From NCBI GenBank assembly GCA_047495785.1, contig JBLDXI010000024.1, forward strand, positions 2,480,001 to 2,544,000: DNA of 64,000 nucleotides, in the 5' to 3' direction. The notes under the pieces are model-generated. The model did no database searches. It was given only the letters and a program-made list of their open reading frames with translations, and was not told where the DNA came from. A program made the position numbers and the translations under genes. The stretch comes from Lepidodermella squamata (taxonomy: Eukaryota; Animalia; Gastrotricha). Shown here piece by piece: positions 5,461 through 14,499 of the stretch; within the stretch, counting starts at the first letter, position 1; each line of letters opens with the position of its first letter.

Positions 5461-8033
5461 TCATTTTCCGTACTCGATTTCGCATATAAACCACATTTTA
5501 TCATTGCAGCTGTTGTCCGCCCATTTCCCCGTCTTTTCAACCCACATAACGGCACACGCGTTTGCGCCATCATTTGGCTCGCCTGAATTCCAATTTGTCC
5601 AGGTAGCTGGCTCGCCATTGCCCCAAGTCGCTGCTGCTGCGTTATTGATAGTTTTCAGACCGATATGAATAATATTTGGCGTGAAATATTGATCTGGGGG
5701 AAATAATCAAGGCTTAAACTTGAAATGTACAGAGGAGCCTGTAACTAACTTCCACCGCCTTTCATCGTTATGGCTTGCACGAACATATGCTCGTCGTAGG
5801 TGGTGAGAGTCGCCAAGTGCCAGCCCATTTTTCCGCAAATAGTGTTCGCCTCGTCGTGGGTCGCGAAATACGTATATAACTTGTAGCAGCTACCCCTAAA
5901 GTAAAACGGGCACCACTCTTCCACCTTCATCATGCACATTGGGTTGGCATCGCCGCTCAACGGCTCGACAGTCCAGTCGTAGCCATCGCTTGCAGAAGGA
6001 TTATTGGAAATCGCGGCATGGGGCATCAAAGGACTGTCGAACACTTGGTTATTCGCCCAGTCAGATTCAGCTGTAGGGTAAAACGTTAGTAACAAGTGAA
6101 CTCATGAAATGAGATTTACGGCAAAGGGGAACGTTGCACCTTTCGGCTACACCGTTGTCGTTGCGATAGCACCAAACGCTATCGTTGAAGACTGCGGAGC
6201 TTGGGTTGCGGCAATAGGCGTGGGACGTGTACCAATTAGGAAATTGCTGCCAGCTGTTGATGAAAGATGAGTTAGCGTTTTCCCAAGAGCGGCACGGCAC
6301 CCCACTCGCAGTCTGAGCTAACGTGCCGTAGTACTCGCGGCCAGCTGGGGTGAATCGACATTCTGAAGGCCACGACATGCTAATAGCTTAAAAATCGAAA
6401 AATATCATGCAGAGCCTCAAGAAAATTAACAGAAATACGAGTCTCGCATATGGCATAAGTGTTAGTTGTGCAGCAACCGCAGGAAACGTCTTGCGTGAAC
6501 ATCGCCGTGAAACCTGGAACGCTTGTCTGCCAGGGAGCTCCCGAATCTATTCGTCCACAGTTCTCGAGGGTGCCACCTCCCGGCTCACTGATTATTTCAG
6601 TCAAATGTTATCGAGCGTTTTGTTTAAAAAAGGTTTCTTACTTAGGATACCATCGCCACCTGTCGTAGGTTGGGTCGGTATACGTTACAGATCGATCCAA
6701 AGTTGTCCAGTTTCCCTCTTGAACTTCATCCGTAATATCTGCCCAAAAGGAAACACCAACGCGAGATGCACCGTAGCTGGCCATAACTTGCTTCCGGAAG
6801 TCACTTGTTGTGATGAGTTTGCCACCCGTCCTACGGCAATTGTCATAGGCCAAAGTTCTGGTACTAGCTGCTCGGAAAATCGTGAGACAGGTGTCGCGGA
6901 ATCTTACACCGTAAGGGCAAGGGCCGCTGTTGATATTATTCGGCTCATAATACTCAGAACCAGCCAAAGAGACTCTTTGCGTGTCGAAGCAAACTTTACT
7001 CTTAAGCCAGCAGGTTTTATCAGAAGGTCGCCAGGTGAATGAAACACATCCGAGTGTATCAGCGCAAGCCTTCTGACACTGAAGCCGAGTTAGCCCATTC
7101 AGAGTAGTCATATCATTACCCCCACATTGCATATTGCCTCCAATGAACATAGGCGGTCGATCAGCATCAACTTTCTCGTAAAACCAGCTATCAATACTCA
7201 ACGCAGCGCTTGGATGACTGCAAGAGCGGTATTTGACACAGCATTTGCTTGAAGTTTCAGCGTAGAGGAACGCCACGCATTGGCCGTGGAAAGTCTTGTC
7301 ACAAAGTCGGACGCAATCTGCGAGGCCAATTGGCTGTTTGCATTTCAAGTCATTCCCACCACAGTCGCCTCGTCTTCTCACGTAGCCTGGGACCTTCTCA
7401 ACAGGCCGGGCCCATAGGTTCGAATCGAAAAGCGAGTAGCCAGTCCACCATTTCGGGATATTTGAATAATTTGAAGCCAAAATCTGGGTGAAAAGTTATC
7501 AGTTTCTATAAAACAAAAGTTTTTATTTTAGTTACATTATAGAGGTAAGACCGTTGCTCTGGTGTTTCGAAGGTCACCAAACTTGACATGTGGAGCTCCT
7601 CGCAATACTGCCAAGCTGCAGGTCTCTTGCTAGGGCTGTTATTCGGCGGAATGTAGTAGCATCGATTTGAAGCGGTGTCCATCTGCCAATTTGGTGGGCA
7701 AAAGAAGCGCTTGTGGTACATCTGATGCTGGAAAGCTAGGTCTGACTTGATTGTTGGTAGCGGGGTAGGTGCATCGGGGTGTAAGTAGACCTTGCAAGAC
7801 TGAAAGGCCTTGCTATAGGCGAAGCTGTTGCAGTTCCTGGTTTGGCAATAGAACACACATTCAGCACTTATTGCTGCGGATACTTCGAAAATAGGTTGGA
7901 GATTAGCCGGAAGTGAGTTGGCGAAGTCGGGATTCGCGATCCACTCATTGATTATTGACGCTTGCTGAGCTTGAACCGCAATGAAGCAGTGAGAACTCAA
8001 GATAATCAGGAATTGTACATGGAGCAGTTTCAT
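5461..8033 (-). CDS. Secreted mosaic lectin, paralog C: signal peptide-PAN-[CTL N-half]-PAN-PAN-CTL-Kringle-[CTL C-half]-CTL(EPN); ~6 exons
   Basis: Signal MKLLHVQFLIILSSHCFIA, PAN Cys patterns, kringle YCRNP...WCY, and last exon ...SGEPNDGANAC...WADNSC..KMWFICEIEYGK* ending at 5461. Short GT-AG introns join ORFs 7506-8033, 6638-7480, 6380-6604, 6067-6378 and 5745-6095. Confidence 0.85.
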
Positions 8034-8807
8034 CTTATTACTTCAAGTTCAAACTCAACCTCGATAATTTCCCTTTGTCGCGACTTGGACGGTGCGTGAC
8101 AGCTGGAACTTTCGAAACAATGGCGCTTAGAAATCGATTTCATCAGATAATTTTCACACCTCACTCGGCCTCAGCATAATTTGTTGAGAGTCGAATTATA
8201 CTCCCAAGCAACGAAGCGGGTATCGAAGGCTCCGGCCTCCGGCTATGAAAAATTGGTTCTCAAATGTTATTACTTCATTGTTGAACGTCAACCACTGATA
8301 ACAACGCTCGAGGCATGACTGAATATTAGGTTTCTTCCACATAATGGCGTGCTGGAACAATTCTCACCTTAATACGCACTTGCAAATTTGACAATACAAT
8401 GATTAAATTATTTAACGTCCGGGGCAATTTTTCATTCTTGCCGAGGCAAATCCCGTAAAGGTGGGCGTATTGATTTTGTTTCATATTTTACTCTTTCATA
8501 TTTTATGTCTTTGCGACGTGCTCCGAAATATTTGCCAATAATATCCATTGTTACCATCAAATAGTTGGGATCGCGGCTAGCGCAATAATAAAACAGAGCC
8601 TTATTTGTTGCTCTTGTTCTGTAACTTTTCGATTTTGATTGAAATCATTTCATACCTATCATATCTAAATTAAGATTAAGACTAAATTTAATTTTTCAAT
8701 CAAATAATTTAAGATTAGCTTTACGGATGTAAAATTTGTCGGATTATTTCAAACATTTGTCATAGCTTATAATATAGCTTTTGCAAGTAAATTGATTTGT
8801 GGGCATC

Positions 8808-11925: not shown

Positions 11926-14499
11926 TTATCGCCCAATTTCGATTTCGCAGATAAAGAAAACCTTCTGATTGCAGGGGCGATCATCCCATCTACCGGTGCC
12001 GACGTTAATGTATACATAACCGCATGTGTCGCCACCGTTCGGCTCTGATGCTTCCCACCACATGCCGGTAACAGGCTCTCCATTTTCCCACGTCGACTTG
12101 GGAACGTTACCGAAAACTCTCATTCCGATCCAATAACCGTTCGGTGTAAAATATTGGCCTGTAATAGGATTTTCCTGAATAATATTGGCGATAAGTTCAA
12201 GAAATCAACTCACCTCCAGCTCGTGCAGCAATCGATCGAACAAACATGTGCTCATCGTAGTTGTTCAGTGTTACCAAATGCCACCCGTTCGACTTGCAGG
12301 CATCGCTTGCATCGTTGTAATTATATATTAGTTGATAATAACGATAGCAACTGCCTTTGTAGTAATAGGGACACCAGTCTTTCATCGACATGGAACATAA
12401 TGGATTTGCCGTAGCTGTGAGATATTCTGTCGTCCAGTCGTAGTTTTCAGATGCACCAGGGACCCTTGAAATGGCCGCATGGGGATACATAACATCGTAG
12501 AATATCTGGTTGTTAGCCCAGTCAGATTCCGCTATAAAAAATTAAGCTAGATCAAGAGGGTTGACAAATCCCTAAACCTACGACACATTGGAACATTGCA
12601 TCTTTCTGCCACTCCGTTATCGCTGCGGTAACACCAAACGCTGTCGTTAAACACGCCGGAATCCGGATTGCGGCAGTAAGATTGAATCTGGTACCATTCG
12701 GGGTATCGCTGCCAGTTACCGCGGTATGGATTGCTGGCATGGTCCCACGTTCTGCAAGCTACCCCACTAACAGTAGTACCCAACGTGCCGTAGTACTCAC
12801 GGCCATTTGGGGTGAATCGGCATTTGTCAGGCCATGACATTGTTATAGCTTTTGATTAACAAAAAGTTTATATCGGCTAAATCGATGTAGATTAGAGTTA
12901 TTACGTGTTTCGCAGACAGAATAGGCTGCACAGCCGTTGCAGTCACATGGGTAGTCGTGCATAGCCCAGAAGCCATAGCCGTCTACAGTAGTCACGCCCC
13001 AATCGTTCGGTATCCTGGCACAATTTTCTCCTGGAGAGTTAACAGCAGGCTGAGGAAAATTTCTACACACAAATCGGGGTAGTTAACAACAGAAAATTTT
13101 TCGAAGCTAGACATACATGTTATACCATTTCCATTGGTCGTAGAAAGGATCAGTTAGGTTTAGAGATTGATCGGCTGTGGTCCAGTAATTTTCGTGGCCT
13201 GTATCTTGAAAATCCACCCAATGTGCAGTGCCGAAGTTCATCGCCATCTGATTGCTGAGCATTTGCTTCATGAAACCTGTTGGACTCACGAGTTTCCCGC
13301 CCATTTTCCGGCAGTTATCCATCGCTGTTTGCATTTGCACACTGCTCCTGTAGGCTGTCAAGCAAACATCGCGGAATCTCACGCCGTGAGGGCACGGGCC
13401 ATCGTTTATATCACGAAAGTCGTAGGCGTACGTGGGCACGGTGTAACCAGTCGCTCGATTGGTGTCAAAGCAAGACCTATATTTGATCCAGCAATTTTTA
13501 TTGGTTTGCCAACTGTAAGAAACGCATCCTAGAGTGGTGCGGCAAGCTTGTTCGCACTCCCTACGAGTTAGCCCAGAAATCGAACGCATATCACCACCGT
13601 TACAGCCATAATTATCTGGTAATGCAGTAGGGGGTCGGTCTTGGTGGACCTTTTCATAAATCCAAACTTCGGCAACATTTACGTTACCAGGCTGGTCGCA
13701 AGATCTCAACTTTGGGCAACACATTGAGGTGAGTTTGTAATAGACGAAAGCCACGCATTGCCCGCCGAGTCGACGATTGCATAATTCAGCGCATTCTGTG
13801 GGGGTCTTAACTTGGCAAGGGCTCAAAATATCGCCACCGGTACACTCGCCACGTCGCTTTATGTAACCAGGGATCTCTTCAACAGCTCGAGGCCATAAGT
13901 TCGAGTCAAACAAAGCGTAGCCAGTCCACCATTTTGATATATCACTGAACTTTGAGTCCAAAATCTGCATCAAAAGAGGATATCTTGACTGATCCTTATA
14001 CAGATTAGGTCAAACTCACTGAGTAAAGCCCGGATCGTTGTTCTGCCGACTGGAACGTAACCAAAGATGAAAAATGCCTTCTTTCACAGGTCTGCCAGGC
14101 TTGATTTCGATTCACAGGGGTGTCATAACCCGTAGCGTAGTAACACATTTTGTTATCCATATCCATCTGCCAATCGCCGGGGCAGAAATTCCGTTTGTAA
14201 AACATTTGGTGCTGGAATTCGAGATCGGGTCTCAATTTCGGCAACGGGGTCAGCAAATCAGGGTGGCGGTAGATTTTGCATGACTGAAACTTCGCACTGT
14301 ACGCTACACTGTCGCAATTTTTGACCTGGCAGTAGTATAAACATTCGCCTTCTGTAGTCGTTTTCACCTCGTAAAGCGCCGTTAAATTAACGGGTAGGCG
14401 ATTAGCGAAATCCTGCGATTTTACCCAATCTTCGTTACCGCTATCCGAAAACACCACAGATAACAGGCTCAAAACTATCAAGCAAGTGGATAGAGCCAT
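11926..14499 (-). CDS. Secreted mosaic lectin, paralog A (same architecture); ~6 exons
   Basis: Signal MALSTCLIVLSLLSVVFS. Intron 13965-14019 (GT-AG, 55 nt). Terminal CTL with EPN/WDD ending FFICEIEIGR*. Confidence 0.87.

Follow-up and report, generated by a model that had tools for sequence, protein, structure and literature searches.

The C-type lectin-like fold is regarded as a module that is both compact and contiguous. Interruption of one domain by another is familiar from complement C3, in which the CUB domain is split by the thioester domain, and from integrin β subunits, in which the hybrid domain is split by the β-I domain. According to a survey (Protein Sci 2026, PMC13114784), discontinuous domains, i.e., those produced by domain insertion, are common; a text search of the survey for "lectin" returned no mention. 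Full-text literature searches found no split C-type lectin-like domain (hereafter CTLD), and we found no description in the literature of a CTLD split by whole domains; a flatworm adhesion paper naming kringle and C-type lectin proteins turned out to be about unrelated proteins. Here we describe three tandem paralogous genes (genes 1-3) of the gastrotrich Lepidodermella squamata, all on the minus strand and each with six exons, that occupy positions 5461-14499 of a stretch of 64,000 nucleotides (assembly GCA_047495785.1, contig JBLDXI010000024.1, positions 2,480,001 to 2,544,000), referred to below as the window. We consider it likely that each encodes a secreted mosaic protein in which the first CTLD (CTLD1) is discontinuous, its two halves refolding into one domain.

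The two proposed segments of CTLD1

The protein encoded by gene 3 consists, in order, of a signal peptide, a PAN domain, the N-terminal half of CTLD1 (the N half), two more PAN domains, a second CTLD (CTLD2), a kringle, a segment that we read as the C-terminal half of CTLD1 (the orphan segment), and a terminal CTLD (CTLD3). Signal peptides are present at the start of all three proteins. When the Pfam scan of gene 3 was run exon by exon, exon 1 gave a weak PAN match, exon 2 two PAN domains and the first two-thirds of Lectin_C, exon 4 the kringle, and exons 5 and 6 two parts of Lectin_C. The PAN domains of the insert were above cut-off (PAN_1, PF00024, 25.1 versus 21.4 bits; PAN_4, PF14295, 28.1 versus 27 bits), as were the kringle (PF00051, 46.8 versus 34.3 bits, spanning profile positions 3-79 of 79, with six Cys) and CTLD2 (Lectin_C, PF00059, 26.2 bits versus a gathering cut-off of 22.6). 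An earlier note on this DNA, made from the sequence alone, had listed PAN-PAN-CTLD-kringle after the first half, and these matches agree with it. All the parts that it listed were found, and its inventory lacked one, i.e., the N-terminal PAN domain ahead of the N half, which in gene 3 scored 18.4 bits, below the 21.4 cut-off. In L013, a distant paralog of the same genome, PAN_1 scored 60.9 bits over three stretches.

CTLD3 also passed the Lectin_C cut-off, with 30.6 bits in exon 6 of gene 3 and 40.4 bits in L013. In genes 2 and 3 it carries the motifs EPN and WDD, and in gene 1 EPN and WAD; none has WND. The earlier note had reported EPN with W(D/A)D and had read a mannose/GlcNAc-type site from it; the motifs are as described, and such a site would be a prediction from EPN only, its partner being WDD or WAD rather than WND. 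CTLD3 of the subfamily to which L013 belongs lacks EPN, which the window genes have. In CTLD1 the EPN position is occupied by Q-I/V-F and the WND position by W-T-T/V; to judge from these residues, this domain has lost the motifs for calcium and sugar.

The N half contains the motifs CP..W, CY and W..C and ends at KWWTGY.LFDSNLW, and by eye is the first half of a long-form CTLD. The orphan segment comprises the first 50 residues of exon 5, with the pattern ESDWA..Q.F....PHAAIS....YDWT.E.L..AN..C. The N half contains three Cys and the orphan segment one, whereas all other modules of gene 3 have an even number; the mature proteins of genes 1-3 have 42 Cys each. That the first CTLD stops just after the KWWTGY strand with an odd Cys count, as the earlier note had it, proved true of all three genes. 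The helix-1 Cys of the N half is Cys138 in gene 3 (Cys142 in L013), and the orphan Cys is Cys630 (Cys632 in L013). Both Cys of the inner disulfide (C2-C3) are absent from CTLD1, the strand-3 position being Ala or Thr (AAIS, ATIS); this bond is absent from some accepted CTLDs too.

All three pieces, i.e., N half, insert and orphan segment, were present in 41 copies, of which 39 belong to this genome and two (L019 and L020) lie on metagenome contigs from other organisms. Their order was the same in every one (41/41), even in divergent copies whose insert had ceased, in its middle part, to match the query proteins. The three N-half Cys were conserved in 41/41 copies, down to about 30-35% identity and including both metagenome relatives. 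The orphan Cys was kept in 40/41, the exception being L020, so that the three-plus-one pattern was found in 39/39 complete copies of this genome and in L019. In L020, the end of the orphan segment including the Cys (L020:2050-2140) reads in a frame shifted by one, which probably reflects an indel in the assembly. Correlated loss of the two odd Cys was considered as a test of their pairing and set aside as uninformative, both being invariant.

The two segments are also the best conserved when the window genes are compared with L013, identity being 45-47% for the N half and 43-49% for the orphan segment (the best two), against 30-43% for the other segments. In the alignment of orphan segments (A5), mean column identity was 66%. 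Conserved to this degree, the orphan segment is probably not a linker.

For comparison with other CTLDs we used a profile of 128 columns and a hidden Markov model (HMM), both built in this work from 111 domains of unrelated proteins, with the lectin family itself and the seed excluded; joined sequences were scored against them with local scripts. Against this HMM, CTLD3 of gene 3 scored 83.6 bits and CTLD2 29 bits (positions 2-120). In hhalign comparisons, the family profile of the N half (A4) aligned with columns 1-62 of the 128 (probability 96%, E 2.5e-9), and the orphan profile (A5) with columns 82-126 (P 0.002, probability 13.5%). In the latter alignment, which is in the register to be expected, DW of the orphan segment is matched with nW, AAIS with the Cys-Val strand, YDWT with G.WND, and its only Cys with the final Cys of the CTLD, in keeping with the claim of the earlier note that this segment resembles a CTLD C half that has kept the final Cys and lacks the inner ones. 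As judged from these profiles, the break points of the two segments are complementary, with no overlap and almost nothing missing. Two truncations that had arisen independently would not be expected to give this pattern.

When the N-half and orphan profiles were joined, 122 columns were aligned, covering positions 1-126 of 128, with a score of 51-53, compared with 47 for the N half alone. With permuted or reversed orphan columns in the join, the alignment ended at column 62 and the score was 47, so that only the true join aligned from end to end. For single sequences, the join of L013 scored 22.3 bits against the HMM as one domain (positions 5-120), compared with 14.6 and 8.4 bits for its parts, and five shuffled controls showed no gain (12-15 bits). 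The join of gene 3 scored 21.7 bits, compared with 18 and 3.8 bits for its parts.

Searches of other sequences gave a similar placement. With hmmsearch, A4 matched PDB sequences of DEC-205 (E 1.6e-7), PLA2R (E 1.4e-5), the mannose receptor and snaclecs, always over the first half of the solved CTLDs. When the orphan segment together with CTLD3 was compared by BLASTP with two tandem-CTLD proteins (P0141 and P0088; E 3e-12 and 7e-11), the orphan segment aligned, in register, with the C half of a CTLD, and the CTLD after it was matched by CTLD3.

Predicted assembly and the alternatives to it

We modeled the two segments of L013 (residues 107-204 and 590-638) as separate chains with ESMFold2, in three runs and with three controls. 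The interface score (ipSAE) was 0.68-0.70 in the three runs and 0.00-0.01 in the controls (0.69 against 0.01 for the best of the three controls). In calibration, the ipSAE mark was reached by 51/78 solved complexes and 2/108 mismatched pairs and, among eukaryotes, by 39/65 solved pairs without a like older complex and 2/126 unrelated pairs. At least 83% of contacts were common to the runs, and the predicted local distance difference test (pLDDT) score of the partner was at least 65. Strand 1 of the N piece (19-23) paired with the last strand of the orphan segment (40-44), the helix-1 Cys (36) was in contact with the orphan Cys (43), the expected error being 0.9 Å, and the second Trp of KWWTGY (72) packed on orphan residues 39-42. 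The parts next to the junction (N piece 79-98 and orphan 1-13) were placed without confidence, as expected because the insert would emerge from that loop region. The likeness of the N half and the orphan segment to complementary halves of a CTLD, with canonical contacts, is shown by these models. The earlier note had named two tests in advance, i.e., packing of the segments in models and the score of their join relative to the parts; both favor a single discontinuous CTLD, because the halves pack in the model and the join outscores its parts. Its central proposal is supported on both counts and is still a prediction.

If the proposal is correct, the N half would supply the hairpin at the N terminus of CTLD1 together with both helices and strands 1 and 2, strand 2 being the WIGL-like one. 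The chain would then leave the fold at the start of the long-loop region, pass through four autonomous domains (PAN, PAN, CTLD2 and kringle; about 385 residues), and re-enter two residues past the last kringle Cys via the 50-residue orphan segment, which would provide the remaining loop region and strands 3, 4 and 5. The helix-1 Cys of the N half would bond with the single orphan Cys, forming the canonical outer disulfide of the CTLD, so that the insert of about 385 residues would become a covalently closed loop. CTLD1 would thereby act as a hub, with the N-terminal PAN domain and the last CTLD at its two ends, and the insert would project from the side on which ordinary CTLDs bind their ligand. 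Our data show how the segments are ordered and conserved, that gene 3 is transcribed, that the profile matches complement each other and that the halves are predicted to pack; the disulfide, folding within one chain and the function are inferred.

Several results weigh against this proposal. Neither half of CTLD1, in gene 3 or in L013, was matched by Pfam Lectin_C at the cut-off of 22.6 bits, in keeping with the expectation of the earlier note that linear domain scans would miss the nested architecture. The orphan profile A5 alone found no CTLD among PDB sequences, its hhalign probability was only the 13.5% given above, and the gain from joining was modest (4 to 8 bits) and varied with the N-half cut point. 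The argument from Cys parity fails in the L013 subfamily, in which the nested CTLD2 has five Cys. The pass with ESMFold2 may reflect memory of a very common fold: because CTLDs are abundant among solved structures, it is evidence of likeness rather than proof that the segments meet in the real chain, and a two-chain model fits pairing within and between chains alike. As a single chain, L013 was modeled by AlphaFold2 from shallow alignments (A9, A11) with low confidence (mean pLDDT 41.6 for the full 781 amino acids and 45.8 for the 534 residues 107-640), and the halves were not assembled. In these runs only the PAN domains folded well, while CTLD2, the kringle, the orphan segment and CTLD3 were unfolded. 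The low confidence can be ascribed to the alignments, which contained three near-identical full-length sequences, most other rows having been dropped. Alignments A1, A3, A6, A7, A8, A10 and A12, in which MAFFT had placed fragments of one CTLD on another, were discarded; the rows left out of A7 had the second-half exon of CTLD3 placed over the WIGL strand of CTLD1 and the orphan segment, which would have given false coupling.

Some of these results are what would be seen if the N half and the orphan segment were decayed remnants that no longer fold together, the latter serving as a conserved linker or small module, with both odd Cys free or bonded to other partners. Pfam sees neither half, the orphan segment by itself gives a weak CTLD signal, and the AlphaFold2 single chain did not bring the halves together. 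We nevertheless think this improbable. Remnants would hardly be expected to match columns 1-62 and 82-126 of the same profile without overlap, to be the best conserved segments relative to L013, or to keep their order throughout and the three-plus-one Cys pattern in all 39 complete genome copies and L019. The halves also dock as a canonical CTLD with controls at 0.01, and a lone half-CTLD would leave its hydrophobic core exposed. Still less probable, in our judgment, is that the orphan segment is an N-terminal extension of CTLD3, packed there and not on the distant N half. It does lie about 8 residues ahead of the first Cys of CTLD3 and shares an exon with the CTLD3 N half, but the N terminus of CTLD3 is complete in the long form without it, with the pair C0 and C0', and the Cys of CTLD3 are even in number; BLASTP places the orphan segment on the C half of a preceding CTLD and never on a CTLD extension, and both the orphan Cys and the third Cys of the N half would stay unpaired.

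A different question is whether the halves, if they do pair, pair within one molecule. The orphan segment of one protein might complete the N half of another, giving disulfide-linked dimers or head-to-tail chains, i.e., a domain-swapped form of the split domain. The sole confident model used the halves as two separate chains and fits this arrangement equally well, and snaclec chains (echicetin, convulxin) are among the PDB matches of the N half; snake-venom lectins include loop-swapped CTLD dimers. We give pairing between molecules little weight all the same: local concentration favors pairing within one chain, no sequence feature would keep an insert of four domains from closing into a loop, and the first PAN domain of the insert adjoins the end of the N half, with the orphan segment beginning two residues past the kringle, as in a loop that leaves a fold and re-enters it.

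A more speculative extension of the split-CTLD proposal, to which we attach only a small probability, is that CTLD1 is a conditional or intermolecular clasp, or that skipping of the insert switches the protein from the nested to a plain PAN-CTLD-CTLD form. In the clasp version, the orphan segment of another molecule would complete the N half, which may yield disulfide-linked head-to-tail polymers of lectin, PAN and kringle modules, and these may serve as a self-assembling extracellular matrix or an agglutinin. The skipping version concerns paralogs in which the insert is flanked by phase-1 introns (see below), and our RNA covers gene 3 and two joints of gene 2, genes where no intron marks the N-side end of the insert. 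No insert-skipping isoform was present among the RNA contigs of gene 3.

Gene models, family and origin of the insert

The positions of the three genes and their parts are given in Table 1. The span 5461-14499 is bounded exactly by the stop codon of gene 1 at one end and by the start codon of gene 3 at the other. Contigs from run X1 contained GT..AG skips at 5/5 introns of gene 3 and the run therefore behaves as RNA; one X1 contig spanned exons 1 to 4 unbroken, and gene 3 is transcribed with the insert included. In gene 2, the joints 10819/10881 and 9037/9087 were supported by RNA contigs. In gene 1, local HMMs for the two parts of the N half (N1, N2) and for the orphan segment matched in that order. 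The window is of eukaryotic character, with a G+C content of 43-48% and introns of 49-61 bases, in an assembly of 121 Mb.

Table 1. Positions in the window of the lectin genes, their parts and a related piece
Feature	Position	Strand	Description	Basis
Gene 3	11926..14499	-	six exons, 767 amino acids, secreted	RNA splice joints, open spliced frame, exon-by-exon Pfam
Gene 3 exons 1 to 6	14499-14020, 13964-13117, 13062-12905, 12848-12582, 12531-12213, 12157-11926	-		
CTLD1 N half, first part (gene 3)	14020..14199	-	end of exon 1; C0, C0' and C1 cysteines, helices 1 and 2	
CTLD1 N half, second part (gene 3)	13848..13964	-	start of exon 2; WIGL-like strand KWWTGYALFDSNLW, linker to ..GYIKRRG	
Nested insert (gene 3)	12582..13847	-	about 385 residues: PAN, PAN, whole CTLD2, kringle; contains introns 13063-13116 and 12849-12904	
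Orphan segment, read as CTLD1 C half (gene 3)	12377..12531	-	start of exon 5; long-loop remnant, strands 3-5, single Cys630	
CTLD3 (gene 3)	11926..12376	-	terminal, EPN and WDD; contains intron 12158-12212	
Gene 2	8808..11351	-	six exons, 758 amino acids, architecture as gene 3	homology and splice-site model
Gene 2, N half	10881-11060 and 10703-10819	-		
Gene 2, insert	9457-10702	-		
Gene 2, orphan segment	9250-9404	-		
Gene 2, CTLD3	8808-9249	-		
Gene 1	5461..8033	-	six exons, 769 amino acids, architecture as gene 3	homology and splice-site model
Gene 1, N half	7536-7715 and 7367-7483	-		
Gene 1, insert	6120-7366	-		
Gene 1, orphan segment	5916-6070	-		
Gene 1, CTLD3	5461-5915	-		
Relic exon-5-like piece	4935..5201	-	orphan segment and start of a CTLD	open reading frame list, tblastn, orphan HMM (75 bits), A5 row

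The relic piece beside gene 1 has PPIFLIL in place of the AAIS strand, with no other family exons adjoining, and looks like a decayed partial duplicate between gene 1 and the copy upstream of it. That copy (L008; G000:C24:2476142-2479984), just upstream of the window start, is a full copy, closest to gene 1, so that the tandem array extends past the window. In the genome search its large exon contained one in-frame TAG, and this copy is perhaps a pseudogene. An open reading frame of 372 amino acids with a signal-like start, on the minus strand at 15149-16267, lies directly upstream of gene 3 and is unrelated to the lectin family.

The earlier note had described a three-gene secreted family. 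The three secreted genes stand, but the family has about 50 members in this genome, in which the orphan profile found 51 matches, spread over 17 contigs, and exon 2 found 71. Insert-free copies were not found, the insert being present in every examined copy with both halves. Some loci were incomplete: L021 and L022 were partial, without an N half, and L027 and L028 gave no orphan match at the threshold used. The ~50 paralogs probably act in extracellular recognition or adhesion, a guess suggested by the kinds of domain present, by the signal peptides and by the large expansion in tandem.

Introns are absent from four copies on contigs C32 and C7, and in L013 the protein is encoded by a single open reading frame of 781 amino acids (L013:2252-4594). 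The intronless subfamily comprises loci L013 to L016 and L029 (C32, C7), and all other copies have at least five introns. The near-identical pairs on C32 and C7 suggest haplotype or homeologous duplicates, and the subfamily is perhaps of retrocopy origin. One member, L016 (L016:1321-4617, minus strand, G000:C7), encodes a paralog of 1098 amino acids with an in-frame repeat of part of the insert, which extends from the middle of its first PAN domain through the second, CTLD2 and the first part of the kringle and would put about 700 residues between the CTLD halves. Its near-identical counterpart L014 (777 amino acids) lacks the repeat, which is either a real variant, showing tolerance of loop length, or an assembly artefact.

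Outside this genome, a word-index protein search with L013 gave no match at E 0.001 or better, and an exhaustive search of proteins gave seven members of the family, each with E 3e-30 or better. These are all unnamed fragments of open reading frames from environmental assemblies (ENA, SRA, Logan), three of which reach the kringle and end at the intron after it. In two metagenome contigs of relatives, both the orphan exon and a last CTLD are found further downstream.

The origin of the insert can be approached through the introns of two paralogs, L017 (contig C42) and L018 (C13), in which the piece containing the WIGL motif is an exon of its own and both sides of the insert have phase-1 introns. 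Because both flanking introns are in phase 1, the insert is a symmetric 1-1 exon set. If the insert exons are removed from a gene of this type, the remainder reads in frame as ..LWPRPID-P-ESDWA.., i.e., as a contiguous CTLD. The WIGL piece was a separate match in seven more copies (C42, C15, C28 and C33), and the intron after the kringle was present in all inspected intron-bearing copies and in the metagenome relatives. In L017 (1680-1790, minus strand), this post-kringle intron contains a run of GGTTAG, i.e., telomere-like (TTAGGG)n repeats. Among the intron positions known for CTLDs is one "downstream of the WIGL motif" (PMC514892). Probably, a PAN-PAN-CTLD-kringle module entered a phase-1 intron past the WIGL motif, in the first CTLD of a PAN-CTLD-CTLD protein; the first of the two introns flanking the insert is lost in the window genes. 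Uptake of the module by a PAN-CTLD-CTLD protein is the simplest history.

Relation to known lectins and split domains

If CTLD1 assembles as we propose, this conserved family of about 50 members would show that very large insertions are tolerated where the long-loop region begins, and the layout could guide insertion engineering in lectin scaffolds. The phase-1 intron flanks in two paralogs would make it a clean natural case of exon shuffling into an intron within a domain. Linear domain scans would miss split CTLDs, and annotations of these genes would then list too few CTLDs and offer no explanation for a conserved "linker". Covalent closure of a loop of 385 residues, as predicted, is open to direct test.

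Among contiguous CTLDs, the nearest in the N half are those of the long form, as in DEC-205/LY75, PLA2R and the mannose receptor family, with which it has in common the N-terminal Cys pair, the helix-1 Cys and the WIGL-type strand. The pairing of strand 1 with strand 5 and the outer disulfide of canonical CTLDs are also predicted for the assembled CTLD1, and the context of tandem CTLDs is shared. By contrast, CTLD1 is interrupted by about 385 residues, comprising four whole domains, between strand 2 and the long-loop region, and lacks the inner C2-C3 disulfide and the calcium and sugar motifs.

By language-model features, the closest clusters in the ESM Atlas (score 0.92) are small secreted proteins of molluscs and other invertebrates, of about 230-250 amino acids, with PAN_1 and Lectin_C. 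Their PAN-then-CTLD start is that of the presumed ancestor, the likeness, without an alignment or E value, being no more than a lead. To judge from the Pfam labels, however, their CTLD appears contiguous, and they have neither a kringle nor a second or third CTLD.

The snaclecs echicetin and convulxin, which are among the PDB matches of the N half, offer a precedent for a CTLD whose long loop leaves its own core while the fold remains stable. In snaclecs, unlike the proteins of genes 1-3, what is exchanged between two chains is a short loop, and inserted domains are lacking. A parallel in principle is with the domain-insertion architectures, in which one domain is likewise interrupted by folded domains and the host is reassembled from two segments. 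Compared with the known insertions, the host here would be a CTLD, and the insert is not a single domain but a string of four that includes another CTLD.

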